The notes beneath the pieces were generated by a model. It made no database searches. It was not told where the DNA came from and saw only the letters and a list, made by a program, of their open reading frames with translations. Made by a program: the position numbers and the translations under genes. This document shows positions 6,430-50,154 of a stretch of 64,000 nt of DNA, piece after piece (the first letter of the stretch is position 1; the number at the start of each line of letters is the position of its first letter). The DNA lies in assembly GCF_963921235.1 (NCBI RefSeq), contig NC_086107.1, positions 46,686,001-46,750,000 of the forward strand, written 5' to 3'. The DNA comes from Mobula hypostoma (lineage: Eukaryota).

Positions 6430-9400
6430 GTAAGAGATTTCTAAAACATTACCTGTTGTGAACAGAGAACAGCACAGCATAGGAATAAGCCATTTGGCCC
6501 ATGATGTTGTGCCAAACTAATTAAACTAGTAATTAGCTAGGAAGTTAAGTAATCCCTTCTGTCTACACAATGTCCTTACCCCTCAACTCTCTGCACATTC
6601 ATGTGCCTATCTCAGAGCTTTTTAAATGCATCTGTCACATCTGCCTCTGCTGCCCCCTCTGGCAGTGCATTGCAGGCACCCACTGCTCTCTGTCTCTTTT
6701 TAAAAGAAAGAAAACCTGCTGCTCACATCATCTTTAAACTTGCTCCCTCTCAGCTTTAGGCACTTTGACCCTGGGATAAAGACAATAGCTGTCTTTTCTA
6801 TCTTTGCCTCTCATAATCTTATAAATTTCCATCAGGTTTTCCCTCACCTTGACACTCCAGGGAAAGCAACCCTAGTTCATTTGAATGGTTTTAATCTGAA
6901 ACATCGACTGTCCATTTCCCTTCATAGATGCTGCCTGACCAAGCACGTTGTGTGTTGCTCCAAGTTTGTCCATCCTCTCCTTGTAGCACATGCTCTTTTT
7001 CTGAGGCAACATCCCACTTCTGTACCCTCTTCAAACCCTCCACTCTATTCCTATTATGGGGACAACCAGAACTGGAAGCAGTGCTCTAGATGTGGCATAA
7101 GCAGAGTTTTATAAAGCTGCAAAAGTAACTTATCAACTCTTGACCTCAATGCCTCAACTAATAAAGACAAGTGAGCCATGTACTTCCTTACCACCCTATC
7201 AACCTGTGCTGTTTTAAGAGACTGTGGCCTTGGGTCACAAAATCCCTCTGTAGATCAATGTTGTTAAAGATTTTGCCATTAAAAGTGTACTATCCCTTCA
7301 TATTTGAGTTTCCAAATTGTAAAACTTATTACTTAGCTGTCTTAAACTCTACCTGCCATTTCTGTGCCCATGTCTATAACTGATCTATATCCTGCCATAT
7401 CCTTTGGCAATTGTCTACACTATCCATAATGCATATAATCTCCGCAGAATTACCGATGCACCTCTCCACTGTCTGTTAATTTTTTATTTGGAGACTCTGG
7501 ATCAGAAGGAATACCTGATTTAAAAACTCTCACATGGAACTGCATTGAATGTTGAACAAGCCAATTATCTTTCAGGAGTAATAGTAAAGGGAAATCCTGT
7601 GTTTTGGAGCAATAATTGAAGGAAGGAAAGTGGTACATTTTGTTTATGTAAACATAGCAATATCTTAGACTTGGCTTTAGATATTTATGATAATACACTT
7701 CATCCTATCTGACTTAAGGTTGGATTTGCCTTTTAATACAGCTAAGCCAAAGGTGCTTCTATCCACGCAACACATTACCATTCTGAATGGTACAGAGAAA
7801 TCTGTCCAGTGTGATGCTGCGGAATTTTATCCTCAGAAGCATGAAATCTTCTGGGAAAAGATATCCGGAGGGAAAACTGAGAGATTGCAAAGACATGTCT
7901 GCACTGGAGCTGCAGTTTCTAATAATGATGGAACGTTTAACGTTTCCAGTAATATTAGAATTGAACCAACTCCGAATGATGATGGTAATGTATACAAGTG
8001 TACAGTGAGACATCAGTCCCTTCCAGACGAACTTTCAGAAGAGGTGAAACTCACGGTTGAAGGTATGTTCCATACTTTGAATAAGTTGGGGATACTATGT
8101 AGCAATATTTGTAACAATGTTTTTTAAAAATGTTCCACTGACTTAAATCAAAGGTTCATTGTTTGTTATTTCACCACATAAAGATACTGGCTGAGAAGTT
8201 GAGTCATGCCTGCAAATAATCAGTAGGCTGGCACATTTTGAATTTCTACAGAGACTCTTGGTGACTGCCTGTTAGTAACTTGCTCATTGAATCATTTAAC
8301 TGTTTGTACCAATGTAACTGCTGATTCTTTCCATGCCATGAGTAATTAGTTTTGACCTTTATCGTACAATTTCATTTTCTGCACACCACTGTCTATCTTT
8401 CCTGTGCTTGATTTGGTTGAGTAAGAGGGGCCCTGCCCTTCTGCCTCTGTCTTCACCAGTGGGTTAGATATTCTTCTAATATGTCCCAAAAATAATTGAG
8501 ACAGGTTTGCAGGCATCATTCTAGCCTTCTGTCACCACCCTTACCCAGGGCTAGTTTTTAATCTTTCTATTTTAATATTCAACAGCACAACTTGCAACTG
8601 ATGTCATTTGCAAATAAGTTGAGTCAAAAGTTGGGATACTGGTAACTCTGAGCCCACCACTTATCCCAGATTATATGGAAAATAACAAAACTACAGAATG
8701 GAATTCCCAGAACATGACTTAAAGTGAAAATAAGTTGCACAATTATGGTTTCAATTTCTTGAAAATCTTTACAGGGTTTATGAATGGTGATTTATAATTT
8801 GCAAAAACTCGTAAGTGTCTCAAGATGATGAAGTTTATTAGTGTGTCTAAATGCTCATATTTTTGTTTTGGTTTTCTAAGTTTCAGAGCCTGAATCAGCT
8901 TCAACAGGAGCAGTGGGAGCTGCATTTGTAGGAGGATTTGTGTTATGTATCCCGTTTGCTGCAGGACTACTTGCTTGTTGGTGGAGATTTCGAGCAGGTA
9001 ATATGAAGACAGTGAAATCATTTTGGTGTGTTGCAGTTTGTGCATTGAGTCATAGAAGATGCAGCTGAGAAACTGGCCATTTGGCTCACTGTGTCCATGC
9101 CAGCTATCAAACACTGGTTTACAAAATCCCATTTTATTTTCCCCAATTTCTCACTAGCTCCCCCCAGGTTCTACCATTCACCTACACTTGGAGAAATTCA
9201 CAGATTTCATTCACCTATTGGCCTGCATATTTTTTTGGTGATGCGGAAGGAAACCAAAGCACCTGAAGGAAATTCCTGCATCATGGCCAGTGTTGAAACT
9301 CCACACAGGCAGTGCCAGAGGTTAGCATTGAACCTGGGTTGCTGGCTGTGAATTTGTATGGCTGTTCTGATTCTTTGACTGTTTCTTGTATCTCTTCCCC

Positions 9401-12400
9401 AAATTGGGAAGTGATGATCTTTTTGCTTTGATTACAGCTAATCTGCAGTAATTGTACTCCTCCATTGGTGTTCAACAGAAAGTCTTGCTTGGTGTTTCTC
9501 CATTGAATGGAATTTGATACTCTAGGTGCAGCCTCCATTTAATTTTGATTTTTTTTTATAATTATATTTCCCTTTAAACACATTTGAATTTGGAATTGAT
9601 GCACAGTTCATTTTTATGATGCCATAAATTACATCATTCAATTTTCAAAGTTCCTTTTGGATAATGTAGATTGACTTCCCCAATAAGCTTCTTCCCTAGG
9701 AAGCTAGTTGAATTTCCTCCAGGTTCACCTGTCGTTGGGCACTGTTTTAATAGCACAGTGTGGAGCACCACTAAATGTGGCCCATTTCATGGGTTCTTAT
9801 CCTTTTTTCTGTCACTTCAATTGCTGAATTTGCTCTTGACATGAAATGAGCATGAAGCAACACACAGAAAATGCTGGAGAAACTGAGCAGGCTAGGCAGC
9901 ATCTATAGAAAAGAGTAAATAGACAAAGTCTCAGCCCAAAACCCTTCTTCAGGATTGAGAAGGGTCTCAGCCCACAACATCACTTGTTTACTTTTCTCCA
10001 TGGATGCTGCCTGGCCTGCTGAGTTTTCCAGGATTTTGTGTGTGTTGCTTGGATTATCAGCATCTGCAGATTTTCTCTTGTTTGTGAAATGCTTTATCTG
10101 CAGAGGAATTGGGGGGGGGGTAGAGAAAAAAATATGTTCTCGTGTTTAGAAATAAACTGTGCTAAGTGATGAATTTTCTCGCTTCTTACCACCTAGATTT
10201 TTTTAAGAACCTGTTTTAAAGTTCAGCAACGGAAGCAATTAACAGAAATCTGAAATCAGAAGTTAGATTTATCAATACACATTGATCTGATTGCATATCT
10301 GACTGTACTTTGATCTAATTGTGTATCTGACTGTACATGCATGTATGCAAAACAATCATGTATACAATTTCAATGTTAGGGCAATATCCTCCCACATTGT
10401 CCCTCTTCGTTGCTTGTACATTGCAATGGAGATACAACATGAAGATTTTTACTCCCTTGGATGTAAGAAAATAAATAAATAAATAGCCCTCCAGTGTTTC
10501 AGAATAAGCAAATAGTGCAATTTTTTAAAATACTCTTAATTCCACTGGATGCAATGTTTGTTGGTTTCGTTATTTTGGGCCGTAATATGCTGAATAAAAA
10601 TGGTACAAACTAATAGAAATTCTGACCTTGTCTGTTTACACTAGTTGTGTCTTATTTCTGTAATTCCAGAAAGGCAATAAAAACTGAGGATGCAAGAAAG
10701 AACATTTACATTGTTAAGTGTTAATTACTTATTTTGTTTTGATTAGTTCCTCCAAAAATTACTGGATGCAGTGAACATCAAGTTTTGAAACATCTTGAAG
10801 AAAGCGTAGTCACTTGGATGGTTAGCTCATTTCGACCTTATGAGATTACAATTGTGATCTACGCAAAGAGGAAGCAGAACGATAAATGTCGGCTTCTGAA
10901 TTGGAGCAGTAAGGATGGGAAAAAAATCTGCAGTCAGTATACATCAACAAATGGACCTGATTGTAATGAAACGAAAATCCTTATGCGGTCAGATGACGAA
11001 GATGCATCCTTTAAAGCACAGATTTCTGAATTAAAAACTAACACACGAAAGATTTGCAGTGTAGAAGTCAGTGTCAGAATACATCCAGATATTTCTCAGG
11101 ATGATGGGGCTGAGTTAAGTATCGAAGTTCAACATCAGGCACTTAAAGAGCCTATAACTAAGACACTGACACTAGACGTTAAAGGAGGTAAATTGCAAAT
11201 ATTTTCTTTAATTATTAATTGCTGTCTTTTGTGGCTCCATTTTGAATGTCTTTCATTAACATATATGGTATTTGACATTGATGTGGATACACAAAATTCT
11301 GGAGGAACTCAACAGGTCAGGCAGCAACTATGGTGAAGAGTACTGACGGGTCACGGCCCAAAACATCAGCTGTTTTGCCCTCCATAGATATTGCCTGACC
11401 TGCTGAGCTTCTCCAGCATTTTGCATGTTTTGCTCAAGACTTCCAGCACCAGTAGAATCTCTTATGTCAATGATGTCGATAGTTATGTTGAATACAGTTC
11501 TTCATCAGGTGGACTCAGTCATTAAACATTTAAAACAATTCAGTATTTTTTTTCTCTGTTTGCATTTCAGTTTGTGAGATTAATTTTTCATTTTCTCTTT
11601 TCTAAGTGCCACCTAAGGTTTTAAACATTTTGACGCCACCTCTCATCAAAGACAAGGAACCTGTGGCTTTGTCTTGTTCAGTCAGTGGATTTAAACCAAG
11701 ACCATTAAGTATTATATGGCAACAAAAGAGAAAGAATAAAGATTTGGAAGAACTTGTCCAGTTGCAGCTGGACAATACGACAAACAAACACGATGACAAC
11801 AGGATGAATTTGAAGGCAAAGCATTACATCAGTGAAGTGGAGCATGAAGACAAAACTTACAGCATTGCTAGTGTATTAGTTATTGTGCCAAATATACAGC
11901 AAGACCAGAACTCGCAGTACTTATGTAGCATACTGCACCACTCCACTAACGACAAGCAAGAGAAAGAAATAACCCTAAGAATTACAGGTATACTATTATC
12001 TAAGCCTTGCAACAAGAAAGGATCCAGATTGCTTATTTCATTTGGAGGCTCCTCTAATGAATGCATTGTCTCGATGCCATATTTCTCTTACTGTTACAAG
12101 GGAAAAGATTTGAAATAATTTAAGAATATAGCAAGCTAAATCAATAGGGTAGGATTGTACTGAAATTAATAAATTAAGTAATTATATTCTATGTCTTTCT
12201 CCAAAGTTTTCAAAGCTATAAGTAATTACATACGGAAAGTGCAATATCTAGTCCCCAACTTTTGAAAATCTGCTCATGTTTCAAACCTTGTTTTCTTTTC
12301 CAGCTCCTCCAAAACTGGGCACTATAAAGTGTGAAGCAGCAAAACCAATTGCAGAAGTGCCCATGAATTTAAGCTGTCAAATAAGTGCATTTTACCCCAG

Positions 12401-15400
12401 AGATATCATAGTTAAATGGCTCAAAGATGGCTCAGAAATACAACAAAATTCTGAAGTTAATGATGCAGTGATTGGACAGGATGAACTCTATCATTTCACA
12501 GCTGCTGTGCAGATTGTTCTTAGCAGCGCTGACACTGAGACAAAATACACATGCCAAGTAGCACATGAGAGCTTATCAAGGCCAATAGAGACTCACTGGG
12601 TAGCTGGTGAAGTGAGTAAGTAACTCGTTTTTTGTTTCTGAAGTTTTTTTCTATAATCAATTTGAAATTCATAAAGGATGGATGTCTAATGATAACTGTT
12701 GGTACTAGGACATACCCTTGTAATTTTTTGGCATCGGTTTACCAAGACAGCAAGCAGGGTGTCACAAAGTCTACAGGCTAATTGTATTACTGCAAAGGAA
12801 GGTGAACATGGTGGATTTGATTGAACAGAGAATTCCTTGGAAACTGAAAGTAAATGAAAATGGGTGAATTCATTGATTTGTTGGTAAAGAAATAAAAGTT
12901 AATACATAGATATAGTTAAGAGGAAAAAGTATAAAACTTTTAATTGCTATTGATTGTAAAAACTGAAATTATTTGATCAAAACCAGCCACCATATGACTA
13001 TACTTATCAAGGGTGTTTGACAGTATTTCACACAATTCAAAGGATATAGGATAGTTTAAAGAACTCTCCTGAATGATTCTATTTTTTAATTACTTTTAAT
13101 TAAGTGCTTCTAACTACTACATGAAATATATAAACAATGTAAAATGGCTGCCCTGATGATGAAAGCTAATTGCTTAACAAGAGAATAATGAGCAATCAAC
13201 AACAGCTGAGAACCCACAAGAAAGCAGTGAGATCCAGTAATTAGAAATAAAATAATAATCCAGATCAGGAAAGACAAGACAATAGTTTTTTTTTTCATTG
13301 CTTTTAATAGTTTTCAATCTTGAACTTCTTACTAAGACATGCTTGTCAGTTTTGGTTTAAATTGTAATATTCTTTAAGTTGCGTATTTAGTTTAACTTAT
13401 TTTTCTTCCTTTTTTATGTCTAGTTTCATTGCCAAAGATCTCAGAAATTAAGGCAGATCCAACTTGCCCTGAAATAGGAAAGCCTTTAACACTTTCCTGC
13501 ACGGCTTATGGATTTTTTCCAGAAGGAAATCAGATATTCTGGTTCAAAGATGATAGTAAATTTCAAGATGCATCACAAGCAGGAATAGTCACTGAAGAAA
13601 GTACAAAGGATTCCAGTGGTTTGTACTCACGATCATCCCGTTGGACATTTAACCCAACTGCTCGTGATCATGGGAAAGAGTTCAAGATGCAAATCCTTCA
13701 TTCTGAAACTTCAAGCAAGCCTGTGACATCCCGTTACCGTCTGCAATTTAGAGGTGAATACCCATTCTAACCAAGTCTGCAGTCACATTGTACCATAAGA
13801 AGCAGGCTATGCCATTTGGCCTCTGATGGCTGCTTTTCTATTCAGTAGGATCATGCCGGGCTTTGTGTTTTTATTGCAGTGTTATATCCTTGTACTGGCC
13901 CCACAGACTTTATTTTCCAATATCTTTCAATTTCTGCCTTGAAGATGGCTTCATAGCTTCCTCACAGCTCTGAATGATGGAATTTTTTTTTCCCATATCA
14001 AAACTGTTAAGACACTGATTCCTTGTTCTCGGTATATCAGCCAGTTGAAACATGAACTGCACATTAATCCCTGTCCAAACAGATAAGAGGTTTGTACATT
14101 TCAATGAGATTGACACTCTGTATTCTGATCAGACCACCAGTACATCATTTGCTGCTATCCCACAGAGCATAGCATCTTGGCCACAGTTACATATAGTGAG
14201 TGCCTAGAACTGGCATCTCAGTGAGAATAGCACTGTGATTGCCTCAGTGCACTGATCGGGTGCAGAGGAAGCCGTGGAGACAGTGTGCAGACTGTGCCTC
14301 TGATGGCTGGCACTGGAAAGTGCTGGATCAAGTAAGGTAACTAACCAGTGCAATGATGCAGGGCTTGGGTGCAGCCCATTGCTGGGGAGTAACAGAGGCT
14401 GATAATGTTACAGATTTTCAGAAATAAAAGGACTAGAGCACAATGTTCCCTCTAATTTGTAATGACTATTGTGTGCAAAAAATCTAGCACTCTGCAATTT
14501 TTTTGCCCAGTGACAACAGTACTTAACTTACCAACGAGGTAGAGGGTAACAATAATTTGTGCGCAAATAAAATTCCTTTGTTAGAAGGTTCTTTGCTGGA
14601 ATATATGGTTAATAACAAAGCAGTGAAGCACCAATATGCCCAATGTCACTGAGAAAATCTTCCAGTCATTGTGGAATGGGTTTCTGTCAGCTGATGCTTT
14701 CTGCTGCAGAACAGCAGTTTAACGGGGCGGGGGAGGGATGGGTGTGGGAGGGGGTATCACTGATGTTTAACAGCTGTGTGATCAGATTTTATGACAAATC
14801 CTCAGTGTGAAATGTGTAATTTTTAACTGGCACAGTTGGTGAAATGATTGGAACAATAATTTTACTGGAGGAGTTTAAATATCATAAAGAGTTGAAAGCA
14901 TTGTGTAAAATGTTGGGGCCCGTTAGCATGCAAATAAGTAATTATGGTACTGGATATGTTTTACTTGAAATCCATTATTGGGTCAAAGTAGAATTTTATA
15001 TTGCATATGAGACAAGCATTAGTATTCGGAATAGTGAGTTTGTGCTGTAGTATACAAGCTGCCATTCCAAATCAACGCTGTCAGTCTGTTGCCATCAATT
15101 CTTGGGTGCCCATATCCAATAAATTTCAATGCAGTTCTTTACATGATGACAAAATACACACAAAGAGCAAAATACAGATCTGAGTAAGCTTTACAAAATT
15201 AATTTTTTTCTGTTATTTGTATGCCTCCTGATCAGATGAATGAAGGTCAATGAGATGCTCATTTCCAGGTATGTCGGCAGGTTATGGCGAACGTTGAGTA
15301 GTTGTAGAAGGATCATGTGCTTTTCCTTTTGGCTCAGTCAGTGGCCCACTCTTCAAGTATACTAACATGGACTGGATTTTCATGGTATATTCTAGTGCCA

Positions 15401-18400
15401 CCTTCTGTGCCTGAAAATGCACTTTATCCTTCAGGGATTCATGTTAAAACAGGATCACTTCCCTTTTCTTCCAAGAAGCAGTGAATCCCTACTCTGGAGT
15501 CAATAATCTTTTTCAGCATGTATCCCACACTTTTGTCCACTCCATAGCCACGTCCTCACCATCAATTGTAACAGGGAGCAGTGCAGAGTGCTTGTGTGTT
15601 CATGTGACTCATTTCAATAAAGTAATACATGCAATGATCATTGATTTTAAACTTAAAACAATATTAATTTAACCATTTACTTCATATCAAGTCCTCCCAT
15701 TGACTGAACTGGTGTGGTTTTTTTCCTAATGCTGGGAATAGATGATTCTAGGAGGATGGAGATGTTTAAGATCTGGTTAGATGAGATAATCACTGTTTTA
15801 TATTTCTAAGAGCTAACTTGATTTGACTAATGTTTGGTTTTATTAAACTATTTTTTCCCCCTACAGGCAATACTGACAAAAAAGATGTCAGCAATAGAGC
15901 AATAAGTGAAGGTAAAATGTTCATTTACTTGAAATCCATTATTGGGGCAAAGTAGAATTTTAGATTTTTACAATTGAGACAAGCATTGGTATTTGGAATG
16001 GTGAATTTGAGCTGTTGTATACAGGCTGCCAGTCCATTTCAATGCCTGTCAGTTTGCTGCCTTCATTTCCTGGGTGCCCATATCCAATAAATTTCCACTG
16101 TTCTTCAGCTGATGACAAAACACACTGAGAGCCAAATACAGATCTACTTAAGCTTTACAAAATTAAATTAAATTTCTCGCATCATTTGTATACCTTCTGT
16201 TTCTCCTGATTATATATCAATGAAGTAGTCATCTCCAAACAGACTAGAGCATCTTACGGCGAACTACTTTTCCCTTGAGGCTCTGTCATGTCATCCACTC
16301 TTCAAATATTCTGATGTGGACTGGATTTTTGTGGTAGATTCTGGTGCCAACTTCCATGTCTTAACATGCATGTAATCGCTTTAGTCCTCCATTTTAAAAC
16401 AAGATCACTTCCCTTGTCTTCCACAAGGCAATGAATACTCACTCTGTTGTCAAGAATCTTGCCTACGCTTTCATCTGATACGTATTTGTGACTTCGGCGT
16501 TAACAACTAAACTCTCATCGCTGTATGTCTCTTCTCAAGTGAATGGGAAGGACGGAATGAGTGTGGTTCAGATCCTGAAATGCTGACAAAGCAGGACAGG
16601 TATGCTGGCATGTGATCCTCTGTGTTGAGAATACTCAGGAAGGAGAGGGATAGTTCCAATGAGTGTGTTTAGAGTGGACACCTTATTTTCAATGTCACTA
16701 TGAGAACATGGCATGACCAGTAGTCAGAAAAGAAAGCATATTTGGCATGATGGCCTTCATCAGGGTAATTGAATGTAGGGGACTAGGGCATTGCATTACA
16801 GTTGTACAAGATTTTGTTTGTGCTGCATATGGAGTATTGTGCACAGCTTTGTTTACTCTCCTATAGAAAAGATATCATTGGCTAGAAAGAGTGCAAAGCA
16901 GATTTAATGAGAATGTTGCCAGTGCTCAAGGGGGTGAGTTATAGGAGAGGCTGAGCAGGCTAGGACTTTAATTGTGGTGTATCGGAGACTGAGAGGTGAT
17001 CCTAGAGGTGTATAATATCAAATGGGCAAGGTCAGGATTAATGCATGAATCTTTTTTCCCATCAAAAGGAATGAAAAACCTAGAGAGCATTGGTTTAAGT
17101 TGAGAGGAGATATCTGATATTAAAAATGATCCAGAACTACTTCAAGCTAAATACCCTGCAATATTTAGCATCTTGAATGGCTGTGTTCCTGCGAAAATCA
17201 AAGTAACGTGGTATAAAGATGGAAGGATGCAAAAACAGGTCATCGTGACAGTGCAGAAGAAGGTCTGAGTTCATCAATTACAAGCATAAAATTTACACCA
17301 GCAAAAGCAGACCATGGGAGTTGTATCAAATATGTGAGGTGGTTCACAAAGAAAGGAAGTTCAAAAGAAAGAATTCAAGTTACACCTTCAAGGGAGATCT
17401 TCTACTGGATAGATATAGATACTTTATTGATCCCAAAGGAAATTACAGTGTCAGAGTAGCATTAAAAGTGCACAGATATAAATATTAGAAGGGAAAAAGT
17501 TACCTCAAACAGTCTAACAGGAGGGGTTCATCAATAACCCGGCTGTCGGCTGTCTCATTATAGAGCCTAATGGCCAAAGGTAGAATGACTTTATAATCGC
17601 GTTCTTTGGAGCAGCATGGTTGTCTTGGTCTATTACCCAAGTTATCCTCTGCTCAGCCAATGTGGCGTACAGAGGGTGAGAATCATTGTCCAGAATTTCC
17701 AGGCTTTTCTGTAGTGTCCTTTTTGACAGCCTGTAGTGTGTTTAGTTGGACACCTATGAAAGAGCCAGCCTTTCTAAACAGGTTAATGGGCCTGCTGTCA
17801 TTGCCCGTGTTGATGACATCGTCCTAGCACATCACCACAGAGAAGATCGTACTGGCGACAACAGACTGGTAGAAGAAGTGAAGGAGAAACTTGCACACTC
17901 CGAAGGAGCTCAGTCTCCTCAGGAAGTAGAAGCGACTCTGGCCCTTCTTGGACACAGCCTGTGTGTTCGTGCTCCACTCAAGTCTGTCATCCAGGTGTAG
18001 CCTCAGCTGCTTGTAGGCCCTCGCTCCAGCAACAACCTCACCATCAATTGTAACAGGGACCAGCGCACCATAGTAGTGTGTTCATCTGACGTATTCCAAT
18101 AATGTTATAGATGCAATGATCATTTATTTTAAACTTAAAATATTAATTTTACCATTTACTCCGAATCAAGTCTCACATTGACTGAACTGGTGTGTTTTTT
18201 TTTCCTATCGCTGTGAGTAGGTAATGATAGGTAGCTACAGTTGTTTAACATCTGGTTAGATGAGATGAGTATTGTTTTAAATTTCTAATGGCTAATTTGA
18301 TTTGACTAATGTTGGGTTTTATTAAACTACTATTTTTCCCCTTACAATGCTGTCAAGGAAGATGACAGCAGTGAAGCAACAGTGAAGGTAAACTGTTCAT

Positions 18401-21400
18401 TTACTTGAAATCCATTAAAGGCACATTTCAATAAAGTTGTTTTAGATGACATGATCATTTATTTTAAACTTAACAAAATATTAATTTAACTATTTACTTC
18501 ATATCAAACCTCACATTGACTGAAACGGAGTGTTTTTTTCCTTTTGCAATGAATAAATAATTCTAGGTGGTTGGAGTTGTTTAACATATGGCTGGATGAA
18601 ATAATTAATGTTTGAAATTTACAAGAGCCAATTTGATTTGACAAATGAGTTTTTCTTAAACCACTTTCTTTTTTACCTACAGACCGTACCCCTAAGAAAG
18701 TTGGCAGCAGTAAAGCAAAAAATGAAGGTAATGTGTTCATTGTGGGAAGTTCGTGAACTGGACATGTTTTACTTGATGTCCATCATTAAGTCAAAGTAGA
18801 ATTTTACATTATTACACATGAGACAAGCATTAATATTTGGAATGGTGAATTTGAGCTGTTGTCTACAAGCTGGCAGTCCATTCCAATGGACATGTCTGAT
18901 TGCTGCCTCATTTCTTGGGTGCCCATATCCAATAAACTTCCACTGTTCTGCAGATGATAACAAGAATACACTGAAACAGCGAAACATAGATCTGTTTACA
19001 CTTTACAAAATTAAATTTCTCACGTCATTTGTATACCAACTGTTTCTCCTGATTATATATTGTAAATATCAATGAAGTAGTCATCTCCAAACAGACACTT
19101 GATCACCTTATGGCAAACTACTTTTTCCTTTAGGGTCCAACATGTTGTCAACTCTTCAAATATTAGATTAGATTATGAGGACACGCAGTCCTCTCTTATT
19201 GTCATTTAGTAATGCATGCATTAAGAAATTATACAATATTCCTCCGGTGTGATATCACAAAAATACAGGACAGACCAAGACTGAAAAACTATCAAAAACC
19301 ACATAATTATAACATATAGTTACATCAGTGCAACAATACCATAACTTGATGAAGAACAGGCCATGGCTTTGTCATATCATCAACTCTTCAAGTAGTCTAA
19401 TGTGGACTGGATTTTTATGGTAGATTCTGGTGCCAACTTCCCTACCTGAACATGCTTGTAATCACTTTAGGCCTCCAAATTAAAACAAGATCACTTCCCT
19501 TCTCTTCCACAAGGCAATATATACTGACTCTGTTGTCAAGAATCTTGCCGAGCATGCATCCCACACTTTCATCTGATGTGTATTTGTGACTTCTGCATTG
19601 ATAATTAAACTCCGTTGTCACTGTATCGCTCTTTTCTAGTGAAAGGGATGGAGGGAATGAGTGTGGTTCAGATCCTGAAATGCTGATGAGGGTAGACGAG
19701 TAAACTGGTATGTGAACCACTGTGTTGAGAATAGCTAGAAAGGAGAAGCATAGTCCAGATGAGTGTGTTAAGAGTGGATATGATATTTCTTATAGAAATG
19801 ATATCATTGGCTGGAAAGTGTGCACAGCAGATTGATGAGAATGTTGTCAGGACTCAGGGAGGTGAGGTATGGGGAGAGGCTGAGCAGGTTAGGACTTCAT
19901 TTATTGGAGTATTGGAGACTGAGAAGTGATCATACAGGTGTATAATATACTATGTGGCATAAAAATGTGGTATAAAGATGGACAGACGCAAAAACAGGTC
20001 ATCGTGAGATTGCAGAAGAAGGTCTGATTTCATCAATTACAAGCATAAAGTTTACACCAGCAAAAACAGATCATGGAAGTTGTATCAAATGTGAGGTTGT
20101 TGACGAAGAGACAAACTTCAAAAGAAAGAATTCAAATTACACCTTCAAGGGAGAACTTGTACTTGTCTAGAATTGCCATGATTCTTTATAGTGTCCATTG
20201 TACTACCACAGTCAAAATTGTATCCATTTAGACTCCTATGACAGAGCCAGCCTTTCTGAACAGTATATTGAGCCTGATGGCATCACCCATGTTGATGCCA
20301 TTGCCCCAACACTACCACATAGAAGATTGTACTGGCCACTGCAGACTGTTAGAACAAGTGAAAAGGAGGCCTACATACTTCAAAGGAGCTTGGTCTTCTC
20401 AAGCGGTAGAGGGGACTCTGGCCCTTCTTGGACACAGCCTCTGTGTTGGTGCTCCACTCAAGACTGTTATCCAGGTGCACCCCCAGGTACTTGTAGGTCC
20501 CCAGCACAGCCACGTCCTCACCAACAATTGTAGTGCAGAGTACTTGTGTGTCCATGTGACACATTTCAATAAAGTTGTTAGAGATGCCATAATCAGTTAT
20601 TTTAAACTTAACAAAATATTAATTTAACCATTTACTTCATATCCAACCTCACATTGACTGAAACAGTGTGGTTTTTTCCCTAATGCTGTGGATAGATAAT
20701 TCTAGGTGGCTACAGTTTAACATCTGTTTAGATAAAATGATTAATGTTTTAAATTTCAAGAGCTAATTGGATTTGACTAATGTCAGGTTTTATTAAACTG
20801 TTTTTTTTTTAACTACAGACTTTGACTCTGCCCATATGAATGGTTCCAGAAGTTCTTCCCTTTCAAAAGGTACGTTTAATGTCAGAGAAATGTATACAAT
20901 ATACATCCTGAAATTCTTTTTCTTCCCAACCATCCACGAAAACAGGAGTGCCCCAAAGAATGAATGACAGTTAAATGTTAGAACCCCAAAGCCCCCCCCC
21001 AGCTCCCCACTCTCAATCATAAGCAGCAGCAAAGCAATGATCCCCACTCCTCCACCAGCAAAAGAAGCATCAGCCCCCTCCACTGAACACTCAAGCTTGC
21101 AGCAAAGCATCGATAAAGATACAGACTTGCAGGACCCCAAATTCTACTCGTTCACCTAATTCGATATACCACAGGCTTTCTCTCTCTGCCTAATAAGGAA
21201 AAAAAGAGGTGTCCCTGTTTCACAGGGAGAGCGGAGACATAACAAGCAATTTTCTGATTTTATGATGTTAAAAGTCCGTTGGGTCACTTTTTCCGAGCTC
21301 TCTGCCCAAAGAGCTCGGGTCTCTGGGCACATAGCCAGAGATCTTCCATCTCCCACGACACACCAATGGCAGCAGTAGAGCAAAAGATAAAGGTAAAGTA

Positions 21401-24400
21401 ATGATTTTGGGATGTTCCTGAAAGGGACATGGTTTACTTGAAACACATTATTGGGTCAAAGTAGAATCTTATATGATTGCACATGAGATGTGCCATTGGT
21501 ACTTGGAATGGTGAATTTAAGCTGTTGTATACAAGCTGCCAGTCCATTTCAATGATCTGTCAGTCTGCTGCCTTCATCTCTTGGGTGTCCATATCCAAAA
21601 AATTTCCACTGATCTTGACAAGATGATGACAAGAATATACTGAAAGAGCCAAATACAATCTGATTATTCTTTACAAAATTAAATTTCTCATGTCATTTGT
21701 GTACCTCCTGTTTCTCCTGTAAATATCAATGAAGTAGTCATCTCCAAGCAAACACTTGAGCACCTAACGGTGAGCTACTTTTCCCTTGTGGCTTTGTCAT
21801 GTCGTCCACTCTTCAAACAGTCTACCGTGAGCTGGATTTTTATGGTAGATTCTGGTGACAACTTCCCTACCTGAACATGCGTGTAATCACTTTAGGCCTC
21901 CAAATTAAAACAAGATCACTTCCCTTCTCTTCCACAGGGCAATAAATACTGACTCTTGTCAAGAATCTTGCCGAGCATGCATCCCACACTTTCATCTGAT
22001 GTGTTTTTGTGACTTCTGCATTGATAAATAAACTCCCTTATCACTGTATCGCTCTTCTCTAGTGAAAGGGATGGAGGGAATGAGTGTGGTTCAGATCATG
22101 AAATGCTGACAAAGACAAGATGGGTAAACTAGCATGTGAGCCACTGTGTTGAGAATACCTCGGAAGGAGAAGCATAGTCCAGATGAGTGTGTTTAGAGTG
22201 GATATGATATTTTTAATGTCTCTATAAGAACATAACAGGTAGATAGGTGAATAAGAAGGAATATTTGGCATGGTACCCTTCATCAGAGCATTGAATGTAG
22301 GGTGCTAGGGCATTGCATTACAGTTGTACAAGATGTTGGTAATGTTGCACATGCAGTATTATGCACAGCTTTGTTTACTCTCTTATAGAAAATGTAACAT
22401 TGGCTGGAAAGAGTGCAATGCAGATTTATGAGAATTTTGCCAGGACTCAAGGGAGTGAGTTATAAGGAGAGGCTGAACAGGCTAGGATTTTATTTGTCAT
22501 TTATCAGAGACTGAGAGGTGATCCTGGAGGTGTATAATATCATATGGGCATAGTCAGGATTAATGTATGAATCTTTTTCCCATCAAAGGGAATGCAAAAA
22601 CTAGGGAGCATTGAGAGGAGATATCTGATATTAAAAGTGATCCAGAACCACTTCAAGCTAAATAGCCTGCAACATTTAGCATCTTGAGTGGCTATGTTCT
22701 TGTGAAAATCAAAGTAACGTGGTATAAAGATGGAAAGCCGCAAAAACAGGTCATCGTGAGATTGCAGAAGGTGGTCTGATTTAATCAATTACAAGCATAA
22801 AGTTTACACCAGCAAAAACAGATCATGGAAGTTGTATCAAATGTGAGGTGGTTCACGAAGAGACAAAGTTCAATAGAAAGAATTTAAATTACACCTTCGG
22901 GAGAGAACTTGTACTTGATAGATAGATACTTTATTGATCCCAGAGGAACTTGCAGTGTCACAGTAGCATTACAAGTGCACAGATATAGATATTAGAACCG
23001 AAGTCAAAGGAATTAAAAATAAGTTATCTCAAACAGCATAACAGGAGGGGATCATCACTGCACCGACTAGAGGAAGAGGGTACTAATGACCTGATATAGT
23101 GCCGTTTGGAGCAGCACAGTTGCCTTAGTCTGTTACTAAAAGTTCTCCATTCTGCCAAGATGGCATACAGAGGTGAGAATCATTGTCCACAATTGCCAGG
23201 ATTTTCTGTAGTGTCTTTTGTTCTACCACAGCATCCACTTTGATTTCTATAACAGAGCCAGCCTTTCTACGAACTTTATTGAGCCCGTTGGCATCATCCA
23301 TGTTGATGCCATTGTCCCAGCACACCACTGCATGGAAGATTGTACTGGTGACATTAGCCTGTTAGAATAGGTGAAAGAGACGCCAGCATATTCCAAAAGG
23401 CCTTAGTCTTCTCAAGAGGTAGAGGCCACTCTGGCCCTTCCAGGACACAGCCGCTGTGTTGGCACTCCACTCAAGTCTGTCATCCAGGTGCACCGCCAGT
23501 TACTTGTAGGTCCTCATCAATTGTAACAGGGAGCAATGCAGAGCGCCAGTCTGTTCATGTGGCACATTTCAATAAAGTTGTTTTAGATGACATGATCATT
23601 TATTTTAAACTTAACAAAATATTAATTTAACTATTTACTTCATATCAAACCTCACATTGACTGAAATGGAATGTTTTTTTTCCTTATGCAATGAATAAAT
23701 AATTCTAGGTGGTTGGAGTTATTTAACATATGGTTGGATGAAATAATTAACGTTTGAAATTTACAAGAGCCAATTTGATTTGATGAATCTGAGGTTTTCT
23801 TAAACTACTTTCTTTTTTACCTACAGACCGTATCTCTGAGAAAGATGGCAGCAGTAAAGCAAAAAATGAAGGTAAAGTGTTCATTGTGGGAAGTTCCTGA
23901 ACTGGACATGTTTTACTTGAAGTCCATCATTAGGTCAAAGTAGGATTTTACATTATTACACATGAGACAATCATTAGTACTTGGAATTGTGAATTGTTAA
24001 CTACAAGCCGCCAGCCCATTTCAATTCTCTCTCAGTCTGCCACCTTCATTTCCTGGGTGCCCAAATCGAATAAATTTCCACAGTTCTTTGGATGATAAAA
24101 GTACACTCAAAGAACCAAATACAGATCCGATCAAGCTTTACAGAAGTGAACTTTTTCTGTCATTTGTATGCCTCTTATTTCTCCTGATCAGATGAGTAAA
24201 AATCAATGAGATACTCATTTCCAGACTCTTTGGCACCTTACGGTGAAATATGAGCATGTGTAGAAGGATCATGTGCTTTTCTCTTCGGCTCTGTCAGTGG
24301 TCCACTCTTCAAATATTCTAACCTAGCCTAGATTTTCATGGTAGATTCTGGTGCCATTTTCCATGCCTGAACATGGTTGTAATTGCCTTAGTCCTCCATT

Positions 24401-27400
24401 GTGAATGCACAAATCATTTTCCCTTGAAAGGGAATTGAAAACGAGAGCACAGGCTTAAGTTGAGAGGAGATATCTGATATTAAAAGTGATCCCGAAATAG
24501 TTGAAGGTAAAAAGCCTGCAACATTTAGCATCTCCATGAAGGGCTATTTTTCTGCGAAAATCAAAGTAACTTGATATAAAGATGGAAAGGCACAAAAACA
24601 GGTCATCCTGAATTTGCAGAAGATGGTCTGAATTTATCAATTACAAGCATAAAGTTTATACCAGCAAAATCAGATCATGGGAGTTATATCAAATGTGAGG
24701 AGGTACATGAAGAAAGAAAGTTGGGAAGAAAGAATTCAAATTACGCCTTCAAGGGAGATCTTCTACTGGATAGATATAGATACTTCATTGATCCCAAAGG
24801 AAATTACAGTGTCAGAGTAGCATTAAAAGTGCACATATATAAATATCAGAAGGGAAATCGAATTTTAAAAATCTGGTACTTCAAACAGTCTAACAGGAGG
24901 GGGTCATTACCTACCCGCTGCTAGCTGACTCATTATTGATCCTAATGGCCGAAGGTAGAATGAATTTATATAGCACCCTTGGAGCAGCACAGTTGTCTTA
25001 GTCTATTACTAAAAATTCTCCTCCGTTCAGCCAAGGTGCCATATAGAGGGCAAGAATCATTGTCCAGAATTGCCATGATTTTTCGTAGTGTCCATTGTTC
25101 TACCACAGCCTCCCGTGTGTCCAGTTAGACTCCTGTGACAGAGCCAGCCTTTCTGAACAGCTTATTGAGCCTGATGGCATCACCCGTGTGGATGCCATTG
25201 CCGCAGCACACCACCACATAGAAGATTGTACTGGTGACAACAGAGTGGTCGAAGGAGTGAAGAAGAAGCCTGCATACTGCAAAGGACCTCAATCTCCTCA
25301 AGAAGCAGAAGCAACTCTGGCCCTTCTTGGACACCGCTTCTGTGTTGGTGCTCCACTCAGGACTGTCATCCAGGTGCATCCCCATGGACTTGTAGATCCT
25401 TTGCACAGCCACGTGCTCACCGTTAATTGTAGGGCAGAGTACTTGTGTGTTCATGTGACACATTTCAATAAAGTTGTTACAGATGCAGCGATCATTTATT
25501 TTAAACTTAACAAAATATAACATTAACTATTTACTTCATATCAAACCTATTAACTGAAACGGTGTGTTTTTTTTTCCTAATGCTATGGATAGATAATTTT
25601 AGGTGGTTACAATTTAACATCTAGTTAGATGAAATAATTCATGTTTTAAATTTATGAGCTAATTTGATTTGACTAATGTCAGGTTTTGTTAAACCACTTT
25701 TTGTTTTAACCTACAGACTCTGACTGTAAGGAAGATTTTAAAAGTTTCAGGGGTCCATCTAATGTCAGAAATGTATACAATATACATCCTGAAATTCTTT
25801 TTCTTTGCAACCATCCGTGAAAACAGAGGAGTGCCCCAGAAAATGAATGATAGTTAAATGTTAGAACCCCAAAGACCCCCTCAGCTCCCTACTCCCACAC
25901 ATAAGCAGCAGCAAAGGAACGATCCCCCTTCCCACAACAGCTAAAAAATCATTGGCGCCCTCCACTAAGCACTCAAGTGTGCAGCAAAGCATCAATAAAG
26001 ACACAGGCTTGCAGTACCCCAAAGTCTACTTGTTCACCTGGTAATTCGATACATCACAGGCTGTGTGTGTGTCTCTCTCTCTCTCTCTCTCCCCTCTCTC
26101 CTCCTCCTCTCTCTCCCCCCTCCCTCTTCCCCCCCTCCCTCCCTCTCTTCCCCCCCTCCCTCCCTCTCTTCCCCCCCTCCCTCCCTAATAAGGGAAAAAG
26201 AGATGTCCCTGTTTCACATAACAAATAACTCACTGATTTACAATGTTAAAAAGTCCTTTGTATCGTTTTTTCTGAGCTCTGTGCCAAAGAATTCAGCTCT
26301 TTGGGCACACAGCCAGAGATCTTCCATCTCCCATGACACACCAATGGCAGCAGTAGAGCAAAAGATCTTCATCTTGGGAAGTGATCATCTTGGGAAGATC
26401 CTGTACTAGGCATAGTTTACTTGAAACACACTATTGGGTCAAAGTATAATTTTATATTATTGCACATGAGACGAGCATTGGTATTTGGAATGGTGAATTT
26501 GAGCTCTTGTATACAAGCTGCCAGTCCATTTCAATGCTCTCAGTCTGCTGCCTTCATTTCTTGAGTGCCCATATCCAATAAATTTCTATAGTGCGTGAGA
26601 TGATGACAGAAATATACTCAGAGCCAAATACAGATCTAGTTAAGTTTTACAAATTAATTTTTCCCTGTCATTTGAACACCTATCTTTGTCTGATCAGATG
26701 AGTAAAGATCAAAGAGGTGGTCCTCTCCAAAGAGACACTTCAGCACCTTACTGTAAACTATGTGCAGCTGTAGCAGGATCATGTGCTTTTCCCTTGGCTC
26801 TGTCAGGTGGTCCACTCTTCATGTATTCTAACATGGACTGGATTTTCATGGTATATTCCAGTGCCACCTTCCATTCCTGAACATATTTTTTACCCTTCAG
26901 GGATTCATGTTAAAACAAGATCACTTCCCTTTTCTTCCAAGAAGCAGTGAATCCTGATTCTGGTGTCAGTAATCTTTTTCAGCATGTATCACACACTTTT
27001 GTCCACTCCATAGCCACGTCCTCACCATCAATTGTAACAGGGAGCAGTGCAGAGTGCTTGTGTGTTCATGTGACTTATTTCAATAAAGTTGTTATAGATG
27101 CAATGATCATTTATTTTAAACTTAACACAATATGAATTGAACCATTCAGTTCATATCAAGTCCTCCCATTGACTGAACTGGGTGTGGATTTTTTTTCTAA
27201 TGCTGGGAATAGATGCTACTAGGTGGATACAGATGTTTAAGATCTGGTTAGATGAGATAATCAGTGTTTTAAATTTCTAAGAGCTAATTTGATTTGACTA
27301 ATATTGGGTTTTACTAAACTATTTTTCCCCCTACAGACAACGCTGACAAGGAAGATGGCAGCAATAGAGCAACAAGTGAAGGTAAACTGTTCATTTACTT

Positions 27401-33400: not shown

Positions 33401-35687
33401 TGCAGTTGTTCCACATGAAACCTTTCTTTTGCCATGCTCTTTTCGGCACCTCTTCCTTCGTTCTGTAACTGAGAAATCTGATCAGAATCGATCTGGGCTG
33501 GGTGCCTGCCGGAGGCTGTGGTGCCAACGCGCGGTGAGCCCTTTCTATCTGTAGGTCTTTTGCGGCCGGTATATCAAGGTTCTCTCTAAGCAGCTTCTCC
33601 ACGAAGGGAATCATCAATCCCGGTTTACCTTCGGTTCCTTCGGGAACTCCGTAGATCCTCACATTTTCCCTTCTCGAGCGGCCGCCTTGATCTATTAGTT
33701 TCCACTGGAGTTGGTCTTGTAGCTTCAGCATTTCTGCCATCACATCCTCGGCGTTTTGTAGCTTCTCTTCAATTCCAACAATCCTCGCTTCGGCTTCATC
33801 TATCCGCGAGTTAGTTTTTACTATTTCTCCTTTAATATCTTCCTGCTGTTATCTTGTCGGAACTCGCAAATCTCTCCGAGAATCAAAGACAGAGTCACCG
33901 ATTCCCCCTCATTATCTCCGTCCTGGCTTGCCGTGGGAGAGCTAGGCCCTTCGCCTTGCTGCATCTCTTTATGTTTATCAGCCTTCGCAGCGGACTTTTT
34001 ATTCTTGTTCTTAGACATCATCCTTGCCCCTTTTATTAATATAGTTATGCAATATTAAGTATTTGTCTAAATTCGATTTTGGGGCAGTTTACCTTTTTTG
34101 TCGAGAGACCTTTTCCTTACACCGCCATTCCCTTAATGACCCGGAAGTCCTCTGTTCTTTCACGTCTGTCTCCATCAAATCAGAGTTGTCCACGGCCCCT
34201 ATTTAACAGATACAATATCATTTCACCGGAGAGCTGCACGTGCTGCGTCACACCACCATCTTCTCCTCTCCTCCTCTAACGTAATATTCTAACGTAGACT
34301 GGATTTTTATGATAGATTCTGGTGCTAACTTCCATACCTGAACATGCTTGTAATCACTTTAGGCCTCCATTTTAAAACAAGATCACTTCCCTTCTCTTCC
34401 ACAAGGCAATGAATACTGACTCTGTTGTAGAATCTTGCCGAGCATGCATTCCACACTTTCATCTGATACATATTCGTGACATCTGCATTAACAACCAAGC
34501 TCCTTTATTGCTGTACGTCTCTTCTCTAGTGAATGGGATGGAGGGAATGAGTGTGGTTCAGATCCTGAAATGCTGACAAGGCAAGACGTGTAAACTGGCA
34601 TGTGAGCCACTGTGTTGAGAATAGCTAGAAAAGAGAAGCATAGTCCAGATGAGTGTGTTTAGAGTGGATATAATATTTCTTATAGAAAAGATATCATTGG
34701 CTGGAAAGAGTGCAAAGCAGATTTATGAGACTGTTCTCAGGACTCAGGGAGGTGAGTTATAGGGAGAGGCTGAGCAGGTTAGGACTTCATTTATTGGGGT
34801 ATCGGAGACTGAGAGGTGATCATGCAGGTGTATCATATAATATGGGGCATAGTCAGGATGAATGCACAGATCTTTTTCCCACCAAAGGGAATTGAAAATT
34901 AGAGAGTATAAGTTAAGTGTGAGAGGAGAAAAATTTTGAAGGGACCTGAGGCAGAGAATGATACATAGTATATCAAATAAGCTGCCAGAGGAAGTGTTGG
35001 AGCAGGTAAAATAATAACATCTAAAAGACATTTGAACAGGTACATGGATAGTGTTTTAGGGATATACATTCAACATGGGTAGATGTGTCTAACTTCCAGC
35101 ATCTTGGTCAGTGTTGATGAATTGAGACAAAGCCCTGTTCCTATGCTGTATGATTCCATGATTCTATGCCATGACAGCAGATATTTCATCTGGATGATAT
35201 TCCATATCTACCCAACTGCAGTAGTTCAGGTGGCAAATGGTGATTTAGTGTAAAGATTTAAATTTGTAAGAATTAAAATAAGGACTTTGCGAGTGCAGTG
35301 ATATATATTGACTCACATAGGTCTTTATTTTTGAAATGCCTTTAAGCTTCTCATGTTATTTATTGTAAATTCTTTTTTTCAGCAGATGTATGGGAGAAGG
35401 TTTCAGAAATAAAGTGCCTCACAAAAAGTCCTAAAATTGGTCAACCAGTAACTCTTTCTTGCGATGTTAAAGGATGTGCTGTTGAAGAGGCTCATATCAT
35501 CTGGTACAGAGATGCTTATCCTTTTGATGAAAAGGAGTACGTTACAAACAAGCCATTTCAAAATGGTAGCGGTTTCACCACTGAACTAACTTATACGCCA
35601 AAACCAAATGATAAACAACACATCCAAGTTCAAATTGAATTTAATTTGGAAGAACATATGAAACAGTATGACTTGATATTAATTTGA
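6088..35687 (+). CDS. NCR3LG1-like: multi-exon B7-H6/NCR3LG1-like Ig-superfamily gene: V-C1-TM followed by multiple C1-like domains and microexons (5' leader not in window)
   Basis: A chain of in-frame phase-1/1 exons with AG/GT boundaries (listed individually below). The V and C1 domains show B7-H6 hallmark motifs. Joining all exons into one transcript is inferred. Confidence 0.7.
7742..8062 (+). CDS. NCR3LG1-like: exon: Ig C1-set domain (ectodomain)
   Basis: aatacag|CT...GAA G|gtatgt, 321 nt. Peptide VQCDAAEFYP...IFWEK...NNDGTFNVSS...YKCTVRHQSL has both canonical Cys and the C-strand Trp. Confidence 0.92.
8887..8997 (+). CDS. exon: stalk plus transmembrane helix
   Basis: tttcag|AG...GCA G|gtaata, 111 nt, phase 1/1. 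Encodes EPESASTGAVGAAFVGGFVLCIPFAAGLLACWWRFRA: about 25 hydrophobic residues followed by RFR. Not in the ORF track. Confidence 0.85.
9859..10046. repeat. palindromic (hairpin) interspersed repeat resembling Penelope-like element termini
   Basis: 9859-9920 and 9987-10046 are inverted copies. Related copies at about 11288-11430, 36185-36790, 48710-48945, 49240-49390 and 58715 onward. Confidence 0.6.
10747..11187 (+). CDS. exon: post-TM atypical C1-like Ig domain
   Basis: gattag|TT CCT CCA AAA...GGA G|gtaaat, 441 nt, open. VPPKI start, SFRP (FYP-equivalent), LSIEVQHQALKEPITKTLTL end. Confidence 0.8.
11607..11987 (+). CDS. exon: post-TM C1-like Ig domain
   Basis: tctaag|TG CCA CCT AAG...ACA G|gtatac, 381 nt. 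LSCSVSGFKP...IIWQ...YLCSILH. Confidence 0.88.
12304..12615 (+). CDS. exon: post-TM C1-set Ig domain
   Basis: ttccag|CT CCT CCA AAA. LSCQISAFYPRDIIVKWLKDG...YTCQVAHESL. Donor taken as GTG A|gtaagt; an alternative phase-1 donor follows 12606. Confidence 0.88.
13424..13753 (+). CDS. exon: post-TM C1-like Ig domain lacking the F-strand Cys
   Basis: gtctag|TT TCA TTG CCA AAG...AGA G|gtgaat, 330 nt. LSCTAYGFFP...IFWFKD...DHGKEFKMQILH. Confidence 0.88.
14836..14937 (+). CDS. candidate 102-nt exon (VGEMIGTIILLEEFKYHKELKALCKMLGPVSMQI)
   Basis: cacag|TT...ATA A|gtaatt, open and phase 1/1. It lies just before the first copy of the intron segment that follows each microexon. The polypyrimidine tract is weak. 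Confidence 0.3.
15867..15911 (+). CDS. 45-nt microexon (GNTDKKDVSNRAISE)
   Basis: ttttttccccctacag|GC...GAA G|gtaaaa, phase 1/1, no stop. Confidence 0.7.
16720..17109 (+). mobile_element. CR1 LINE 3' fragment (paralogous copies about 19790-19960, 22240-22620, 24425-24469, 34670-35160)
   Basis: Degenerate version of the CR1 RT C-terminus (LERVQ-RF-RMLPGL...YRERL-RLGL...RLRGDL) seen intact at 42836-43846. Confidence 0.75.
17110..17393 (+). pseudogene. degenerate C1-like Ig exon, copy 1
   Basis: ISDIKNDPE...KIKVTWYKDG...TSIKFTPAKADHGSCIK with frameshifts. The 5' end is fused to CR1, there is no acceptor, and the donor is lost (caag|ggagat). Confidence 0.8.
17405..18125 (-). mobile_element. Rex1/Babar-type non-LTR retrotransposon 3' fragment (paralogous copies about 20155-20590, 22915-23600, 24765-25500; short pieces about 15500-15620 and 27000-27090)
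   Basis: Minus-strand peptides such as HLDNSLEWSTNTEAVSKKGQS..FLRRLRSF and DAIRLNKLFRKAGSV (ORFs 20349-20564, 25125-25523, 23125-23328). Confidence 0.8.
18346..18387 (+). pseudogene. dead microexon copy
   Basis: Homologous to 27337-27381 but the acceptor AG is deleted (cttac-aatgct versus ctacagacaacgct). The donor gtaaac is retained. Confidence 0.65.
18683..18727 (+). CDS. 45-nt microexon (DRTPKKVGSSKAKNE)
   Basis: ttttttacctacag|AC...GAA G|gtaatg, phase 1/1, no stop. Confidence 0.7.
19967..20150 (+). pseudogene. degenerate C1-like exon, copy 2 (3' half only)
   Basis: WYKDG...TSIKFTPAKTDHGSCIKCEVVDEE; 5' half deleted. Confidence 0.75.
20819..20869 (+). CDS. candidate 51-nt chimeric microexon (DFDSAHMNGSRSSSLSK)
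   Basis: Array-type acceptor ttttttaactacag|AC, then a donor AAAG|gtacgt at the edge of an inserted repeat. Phase 1/1, open. Confidence 0.45.
20870..21366. mobile_element. interspersed repeat inserted into a microexon (paralogous copy about 25750-26345)
   Basis: The 20-nt 5' half (actctgactgtaaggaagat, 25717) and the 25-nt 3' half (ggcagcagtagagcaaaagataaag|gtaaag, ending 21392) add to 45 nt and are separated by this repeat in both copies. Family not determined. Confidence 0.65.
22621..22900 (+). pseudogene. degenerate C1-like exon, copy 3
   Basis: ISDIKSDPEPLQAK* ... KIKVTWYKDGK...IKCEVVHEE, with an in-frame stop and the same CR1 junction as copy 1. Confidence 0.8.
23827..23871 (+). CDS. 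45-nt microexon (DRISEKDGSSKAKNE)
   Basis: tttttacctacag|AC...GAA G|gtaaag, phase 1/1, no stop. Confidence 0.7.
24470..24754 (+). pseudogene. degenerate C1-like exon, copy 4
   Basis: ISDIKSDPEIVEGKKPATFSISMKGYFSAKIKVT*YKDG...DHGSYIKCEEVHEE; TGG mutated to TGA plus a frameshift. Confidence 0.8.
26062..26186. repeat. (GT)n/(CT)n microsatellite and pyrimidine-rich ~20-nt tandem repeat
   Basis: Directly visible; absent from the paralogous element at about 21180. Confidence 0.9.
27337..27381 (+). CDS. 45-nt microexon (DNADKEDGSNRATSE)
   Basis: tttttccccctacag|AC...GAA G|gtaaac, phase 1/1, no stop. Confidence 0.7.
27996..28040 (-). mobile_element. Tigger terminal fragment
   Basis: TA-CAGGTTTCCCCCGCCATCTGAAGGTAGAG is the reverse complement of the element end at about 3880-3918. 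Confidence 0.7.
28348..34275 (-). mobile_element. near full-length L1 retrotransposon (ORF1 + ORF2, frameshifted)
   Basis: ORF1-like 33042-33743 (RRENVRIYGVPEG, IERAHR). APE endonuclease 31702-32679 (SYNVNG, FLQETH, GGDFN, YSRIDY, SDHSP). RT 29763-31772 (LDAEKAFD, QGCPISP, FADD). C-terminus 28903-29817 (CWRRC, HIFWDC). T-rich tail at about 28348-28375. Confidence 0.95.
35386..35687 (+). CDS. terminal C1-like Ig exon ending in TGA (absent from ORF track)
   Basis: tttttttcagcag|AT (NAGNAG acceptor; 35383 also in frame). About 100 open codons: DVWEKVSEIKCLTKSPKIGQPVTLSCDVKG...HIIWYRD...FTTELTYTPKPND...YDLILI*. Confidence 0.75.
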
Positions 35688-50052: not shown

Positions 50053-50154
50053 ATGCAATGTCTTAGTTTAACAGATTTTTTGAAGTTGGATCTTCACTCA
50101 TGTTTTCTCTTTGTCTTTTGACTTTTTTGTATTACTATATCCTTTTTAAAATAG

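Follow-up and report, generated by a model that had tools for sequence, protein, structure and literature searches.

Within the 64,000-nt stretch of the Mobula hypostoma genome analysed here (the window; NCBI RefSeq assembly GCF_963921235.1, contig NC_086107.1, positions 46,686,001 to 46,750,000 of the forward strand, numbered from 1), an array of short exons very probably represents five constitutive or cassette linker exons of the gene LOC134353704. Four of them are 45 nt and one is 51 nt long, all are of phase 1-1, and together they would encode a 77-residue flexible tether from the immunoglobulin (Ig) domain C1d to the terminal Ig domain of the protein. When thirteen exons of the window (V, C1a, the transmembrane (TM) exon, Ig3, C1b, C1c, C1d, the five linker exons, and the terminal Ig-like exon) are spliced, they give residues 43–967 of XP_062918051.1, with 925 of 925 residues identical. 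LOC134353704 is therefore the host gene. It was found in two steps: the last Ig exon, used as the query of an exhaustive HMMER search, matched a family of proteins of 900–1300 aa, and a word-based search then led to the M. hypostoma locus. A preliminary description of the array, made from the sequence alone, had called the exons invisible to programs that call open reading frames (ORFs). This is true, yet all five are already included in the NCBI eukaryotic annotation. Splicing in M. hypostoma is taken from the RefSeq Gnomon model, and indirect support for expression comes from the RefSeq models of eight species; a search for short transcript-derived fragments spanning the linker found none.

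The linker exons and their damaged relatives lie on the + strand as follows.
15867..15911, +: m1 linker exon, 45 nt, encoding GNTDKKDVSNRAISE; in the spliced model.
18340..18386 (approximate), +: dead A-type copy, AG acceptor deleted and frameshifted; from alignment.
18683..18727, +: m2 linker exon, 45 nt, encoding DRTPKKVGSSKAKNE; in the spliced model.
20819..20869, +: m3 linker exon, 51 nt, encoding DFDSAHMNGSRSSSLSK; in the spliced model.
20830..21366, +: 537-bp insertion splitting the ancestral 45-nt exon; from comparison within the window.
21367..21392, +: 3' half stranded when the microexon was split, intronic at present; from BLAST and alignment.
23827..23871, +: m4 linker exon, 45 nt, encoding DRISEKDGSSKAKNE; in the spliced model.
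25717..25752, +: decayed m3-type copy, reduced to an open piece of 36 nt whose donor is very weak; absent from the RefSeq model.
26345..26370, +: orphaned 3' half of the 25717 copy, donor lost; from BLAST and alignment.
27337..27381, +: m5 linker exon, 45 nt, encoding DNADKEDGSNRATSE, the best conserved module across species; in the spliced model.

The four intact copies of the preliminary description correspond to m1, m2, m4, and m5, and their coordinates were exact to the base. Each is 45 nt long and of phase 1-1, has the proposed pyrimidine tract with CTACAG acceptor and the GAAG/GTAA donor, and is open in phase 1 only. The peptides given earlier for these exons are correct once the final G of the preceding exon is added to complete the first codon, because every Ig exon of LOC134353704 ends in a split codon. 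Three further copies had been considered damaged. This holds for the copy at 18346, in which the alignment shows a 4-nt deletion that takes the AG acceptor and a 1-nt deletion that shifts the frame, and it probably holds for the copy at 25717, whereas the copy at 20819 is an intact fifth exon of 17 codons, with acceptor CTACAG and donor AAG/GTACGT, and is present in the RefSeq protein. This exon, m3, originated when the 537-bp insertion split a 45-nt exon, so that its first 11 nt come from the old microexon and the remainder, including the donor, is derived from the insertion. The copy at 25717 has the same insertion, with its derived donor decayed to GGG/GTCCAT. The insertion occurs only twice in the window, at 20830–21366 and 25752–26344, and with just these two occurrences there, an origin from a transposable element was considered and found unsupported within the window. 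Since the neighbouring paralogue LOC134353705 has two modules of the 17-aa m3 type, m3 is a functional type of exon rather than damage.

The five exons are in frame with C1d (13424–13753) and the terminal Ig-like exon (35383–35687), which agrees with the earlier proposal of a linker between Ig domains. The proposal that this linker is charged and disordered was also supported. The linker is a polyampholyte, and its 77 residues comprise 16 K/R, 16 D/E, and 30 S/T/N/G, among them 15 serines, with seven hydrophobic residues, one proline, and no cysteine. An AlphaFold2 prediction from an alignment of 21 orthologues gave C1d and the terminal domain a predicted local distance difference test (pLDDT) score above 90, and about 78 residues of linker (111–189 of the construct) a score of about 45 and no secondary structure. 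We infer that the linker is a flexible spacer, that its length is important, and that its inclusion is regulated.

Every linker exon begins at the second position of a codon and has G as its last base, and therefore the units can be added, lost, or skipped in frame. Each 2.4–2.9 kb unit of the array would bring along its own splicing kit, composed of a branch-point-like TTGAC/CTAAT, a pyrimidine tract, CAG, a purine-rich exon body, and AAG/GTAA. The exon bodies are 67–73% purine against an intron background of 48%, with the exception of the insertion-derived m3 (41%); purine-rich bodies would be in keeping with the enhancer-rich exon definition on which short exons depend. Two sequence blocks accompany the exons. 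The motif GATTTGAC(T/A)AAT is present in all copies about 40–50 nt 5' of the acceptor (15780–15866 and equivalents) and is likely a branch-point block, and TTTACTTGAAATCCATTATTGGG is present in all copies about 15–40 nt 3' of the donor (about 40–65 nt in B-type copies). The two blocks can be read as splicing elements or simply as a sign that the duplicates are young. Neuronal microexons of the SRRM4 type are at most 27 nt long and carry a UGC motif immediately upstream of the acceptor. The exons of the array differ from them, being 45–51 nt long and having no TGC within the 15 nt displayed 5' of each acceptor.

When each 200-bp unit was compared with the window by BLAST, seven related copies and an orphan downstream flank were found. 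The region from 14.9 to 28 kb is a nested tandem array of 2.4–2.9-kb units that are 73–92% identical; over 201 bp, the pair A1/A2 is 91.5% and the pair B1/B2 92.5% identical. The linker exons are homologous copies of this tandem array, and chance resemblance is excluded. The orphan flank, at 14949–15002, is a copy of the intron segment that normally lies 3' of linker exons; it has no exon ahead of it and marks the 5' edge of the array. The units also contain a fragment of a minus-strand retroelement and remains of an Ig exon. Narcine, Pristis, skates, and sharks have two extra Ig domains (D7 and D8) between C1d and the linker, and tblastn with D8 of Narcine, Pristis, and Scyliorhinus detected four decayed copies, with stops and a frameshift, within the repeat units.
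17107..17390, +: psi-D8 Ig pseudo-exon in a repeat unit, with stops and a frameshift; from tblastn with D8.
20006..20128, +: psi-D8, only the 3' half; from tblastn with D8.
22618..22886, +: psi-D8 copy; from tblastn with D8.
24467..24735, +: psi-D8 copy; from tblastn with D8.

The stop codons of the psi-D8 copies differ, and the internal frameshift is common to all of them; therefore, D8 was dead before the unit of psi-D8 and linker exon was amplified. The array grew by tandem duplication and unequal recombination of this unit of a dead Ig exon and a linker exon. LOC134353705, which lies outside the window, has six near-identical tandem copies of C1d followed by a linker in which modules of 15 aa and 17 aa alternate, and is a second case of exon-unit amplification in the family.

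A comparison of copy number between species, suggested in the preliminary description, showed that the number of modules differs among batoids and that sharks have a single linker.
Sharks, chimaera, Narcine, and Pristis: a single acidic linker stretch of 15–31 aa.
Hemitrygon: 3–4 modules of 15 aa.
Hypanus: 3 modules.
M. birostris: 3–4 modules.
M. hypostoma: 5 modules.
Amblyraja (skate): 3–4 modules of 15 aa, of a type that looks unrelated (DYGKKENDVNE...).
Leucoraja (skate): 3–6 modules of the Amblyraja type.
Rhinoraja (skate): >7 modules of a related type (DCGKIENDVN...).

All family members that have the conserved terminal Ig domain carry a charged linker ahead of it. The batoid modules are 15 aa long, some 16–17 aa, have a D...E pattern, and occupy the same place in orthologues and paralogues. 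Stingrays and devil rays on one side and skates on the other each possess a separate array, and the array turns over rapidly between species. RefSeq isoforms with and without an individual module exon are present in M. birostris, Hemitrygon, Amblyraja, Leucoraja, and Rhinoraja. The isoforms of Hemitrygon (973/958 aa), M. birostris (950/935 aa), Amblyraja (1271/1256 aa), and Leucoraja (1303/1288/1273 aa) are one 15-aa module apart, which is the expected signature of single-exon skipping. The idea that linker length is tuned by copy number and exon inclusion is supported by the differences in copy number between species and, as far as inclusion is concerned, by the isoforms of relatives. Tether length would be set in evolution by the copy number of the unit and, in the relatives at least, also by exon skipping.

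Several observations weigh against this interpretation of the array. Rates in exons and flanks were compared between the paralogous pairs A1/A2 and B1/B2 within the window. In A1/A2, the exon is 84.4% identical and the flank 94.3%, so that the exon has changed faster (Fisher p=0.017); in B1/B2, the exon is 91.1% and the proximal flanks are 93.5% identical. The codon changes amount to five non-synonymous and two synonymous in A1/A2 and four and none in B1/B2, so that nine of eleven are non-synonymous. Purifying selection at the sequence level is not seen on the exon bodies. Furthermore, the annotation of M. hypostoma includes no module-skipping isoform among the two listed. The older A versus B copy comparisons have a conservation peak nowhere. 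The test proposed in the preliminary description, of microexons against flanking duplicated intron, went against it: the exon bodies are conserved no better than the intron, although the annotated mRNA includes these exons. When M. birostris is compared with M. hypostoma, the Ig domains are 93–98% identical, m1 and m2 just 53–60%, and m3 is absent.

Exon bodies that diverge at or above the rate of the flanking intron, with nearly all changes non-synonymous, would suit the view that some or all of the copies are pseudo-exons in a duplicated intron, as would the low identity of m1 and m2 between the two Mobula species and the two or three sister copies in the array that are demonstrably dead. 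The RefSeq model would then have joined them up on thin or misassigned evidence, and the mature mRNA would mostly run straight from C1d to the terminal exon or contain the last module only. We consider this very improbable, because ab initio prediction seldom places five exons of 45–51 nt, and the same modular linker has been annotated independently in at least seven batoid species, whose isoforms are one module apart. The five exons retain canonical splice sites, an open frame, and phase, whereas the Ig pseudo-exon of the same units has decayed. Moreover, the 20 nt preceding the acceptor are 100% identical in both recent pairs.

The faster change of the A1/A2 exons relative to their flanks (p about 0.015), with five of seven changes non-synonymous, could alternatively result from diversifying selection on a linker that is itself a regulated or recognised segment, either a cytoplasmic serine-rich phospho-scaffold or an extracellular hinge that is glycosylated or protease-sensitive. 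The serine content (15 of 77 residues), the many S/T residues that adjoin acidic ones, and the membership of the gene in an immune-type family are in line with this proposal. It is nevertheless unlikely, since the excess is limited to one pair and seven substitutions, with none in B1/B2; skate and stingray modules share no conserved motif beyond the D...E ends and charge, and a Pfam search of the linker gave no match.

The module m5 is 93% identical to that of M. birostris and 73–80% identical to those of stingrays, which is about the level of the Ig domains. The constraint seems to fall on splice signals, phase, length, composition, and the last module, and not on the residues of the upstream modules. 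The array also illustrates that exons coding for disordered spacers are poorly judged by whether they are more conserved than the intron.

The remaining exons of LOC134353704 in the window include six Ig exons of phase 1-1 on the same strand, 5' of the linker array. The order in the protein is V, C1, TM, four more Ig domains, the linker, and the terminal Ig domain; the leader exon was not found inside the window.
6088..6429, +: IgV exon, B7-H6-like, phase 1-1; Pfam V-set, top solved-structure match human NCR3LG1; in the spliced model.
7742..8062, +: IgC1 exon (C1a) of the B7-like ectodomain; Pfam C1-set 5e-10; in the spliced model.
8881..8997, +: TM exon, 117 nt, phase 1-1, mid-protein, followed by R/K residues; in the spliced model.
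10747..11187, +: Ig3, a divergent Ig-like exon without canonical cysteines; in the spliced model.
11607..11987, +: C1b, a C1-set exon that retains the C..W..C signature; Pfam; in the spliced model.
12304..12615, +: C1c, a C1-set exon; Pfam C1-set 9e-15; in the spliced model.
13424..13753, +: C1d, a C1-set exon and the final Ig domain ahead of the linker; Pfam; in the spliced model.
35383..35687, +: terminal Ig-like exon with the stop codon and a tandem CAGCAG acceptor; in the spliced model.

The two RefSeq isoforms of the gene, X1 of 967 aa and X2 of 966 aa, differ by one residue, which is explained by the tandem acceptor of the terminal exon (35377–35386). A phmmer search with the V-C1 ectodomain against the PDB matched NCR3LG1 (5e-34), CD276 (2e-23), and TAPBPR (4e-18), and the closest likenesses of the C1 exons are to UrIg2, SIRP, Ig, and MHC-I alpha3. 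LOC134353704 encodes an uncharacterised multi-Ig protein that is B7-H6-like in sequence.

Human B7-H6 (NCR3LG1), a ligand of NKp30, has a short non-Ig cytoplasmic tail. Like the ray protein, it has a V-C1 ectodomain with the TM segment directly after C1. In the family of the ray gene, however, the part after the TM segment consists of Ig domains, five to nine of them, followed by the linker and the terminal Ig domain.

By analogy, the array would belong to a known kind, that of repeated short linker exons, for which the IgG3 hinge and the 21-nt exons of chicken BG genes are precedents. The repeat of the IgG3 hinge is 15 aa long. In both the human IGHG3 hinge and the ray array, short exons (45 nt, phase 1-1) are duplicated in tandem between exons for C1-set Ig domains, and their number, which varies between alleles or species, sets the length of a flexible connector. 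The IGHG3 hinge is rich in Pro and Cys, disulfide-bonded, and semi-rigid, whereas the ray linker is charged and serine-rich, with the single proline and lack of cysteine given above. The ray gene is also from a different gene family, and its relatives show alternative skipping of single modules. In IGHG3, the presence or absence of hinge exons varies among IgG3 allotypes (PMC4202688). The cytoplasmic tails of chicken BG proteins are encoded by arrays of 21-nt phase-1 exons, the number of which varies by gene and haplotype and in which the reading of the split first codon is governed by the preceding exon (PMC5938342). Both BG and the ray gene are B7-family genes with a phase-1 mini-exon array of variable number 3' of the TM exon. 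The BG exons encode heptads of a coiled coil, with hydrophobic a/d positions, whereas the 45- or 51-nt ray exons lack a heptad pattern, code for a stretch predicted to be disordered, and are flanked by Ig exons. The batoid gene UrIg2 has extra short "hinge" exons between C1-type exons and a plastic exon structure (PMC12227049), and it shares with the ray gene batoid-specific short exons in a multi-C1 gene. UrIg2 has a VJ-type V domain, a split leader, and a proline-rich hinge, whereas the ray gene has a B7-H6-like V domain and an acidic/basic serine-rich linker. Membership in UrIg2, raised by the C1 match, is excluded by the B7-H6-like V domain and the one-proline linker; only the C1 domains are similar.

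The window also contains a different, second member of the family, with Ig exons at 50151–50330, 56435–56776, and 60088–60402 on the + strand. These are 70–77% identical to Pristis LOC127577746 and belong to a subfamily that has neither the acidic linker nor the terminal domain, so that the family forms a tandem cluster. A near-complete long interspersed nuclear element occupies part of the intron that separates m5 from the terminal exon (28903–33743, minus strand), with endonuclease and reverse-transcriptase ORFs and an upstream ORF. Further reverse-transcriptase fragments lie at 42836–43846, 52513–55152, and 61400–63047, and a Tc1/mariner-like transposase fragment lies at 735–1602 on the minus strand.

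The oddest thing that we observed in the family is its mid-protein TM exon. A TM segment after V-C1, itself followed by basic residues, is present in 27 of the 31 closest family cluster representatives, and 500–900 residues of Ig domains lie C-terminal to the TM segment. The family ranges over chimaera, sharks, rays, bichir, sturgeon, coelacanth, lungfish, frogs, salamander, and alligator, and its members in alligator and frog are automatically named NCR3LG1. The canonical Cys...Trp...Cys signature of C1b and C1c is present in 13 of 13 species checked. A skate transcript contig has Ig3 spliced to C1b, and the elephant-shark UniProt entry V9K7L7 includes the TM segment and downstream domains. 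A search for a TM exon 3' of the Ig exons found none that was credible, and the TM exon lies upstream, between C1a and Ig3. With a signal peptide and a single TM segment, the Ig domains and the linker after it would be cytoplasmic. The counts of N-glycosylation sequons are at chance level on both sides of the TM segment. Hemitrygon isoform X6 lacks exactly the equivalent of the 117-nt phase 1-1 TM exon, which predicts a secreted all-Ig form. We found no description of the family or of the linker in the literature. We tentatively speculate that this is an undescribed, ancient gnathostome B7-H6-like family that includes amphibians and crocodilians, in which a TM cassette might toggle between a cytoplasmic and a secreted antibody-like Ig chain, and the fast-evolving linker might set the reach of the terminal domain.

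If this were true, the presence of a C1-set chain, linker, and terminal domain in the cytoplasm would be unprecedented for C1-set domains. The array in M. hypostoma offers a clean natural case of a self-contained, in-phase mini-exon unit that would let a linker lengthen, shorten, and diverge fast by unequal recombination. The host family is widespread and unstudied, carries its Ig chain after the TM segment, and merits the attention of comparative immunologists.

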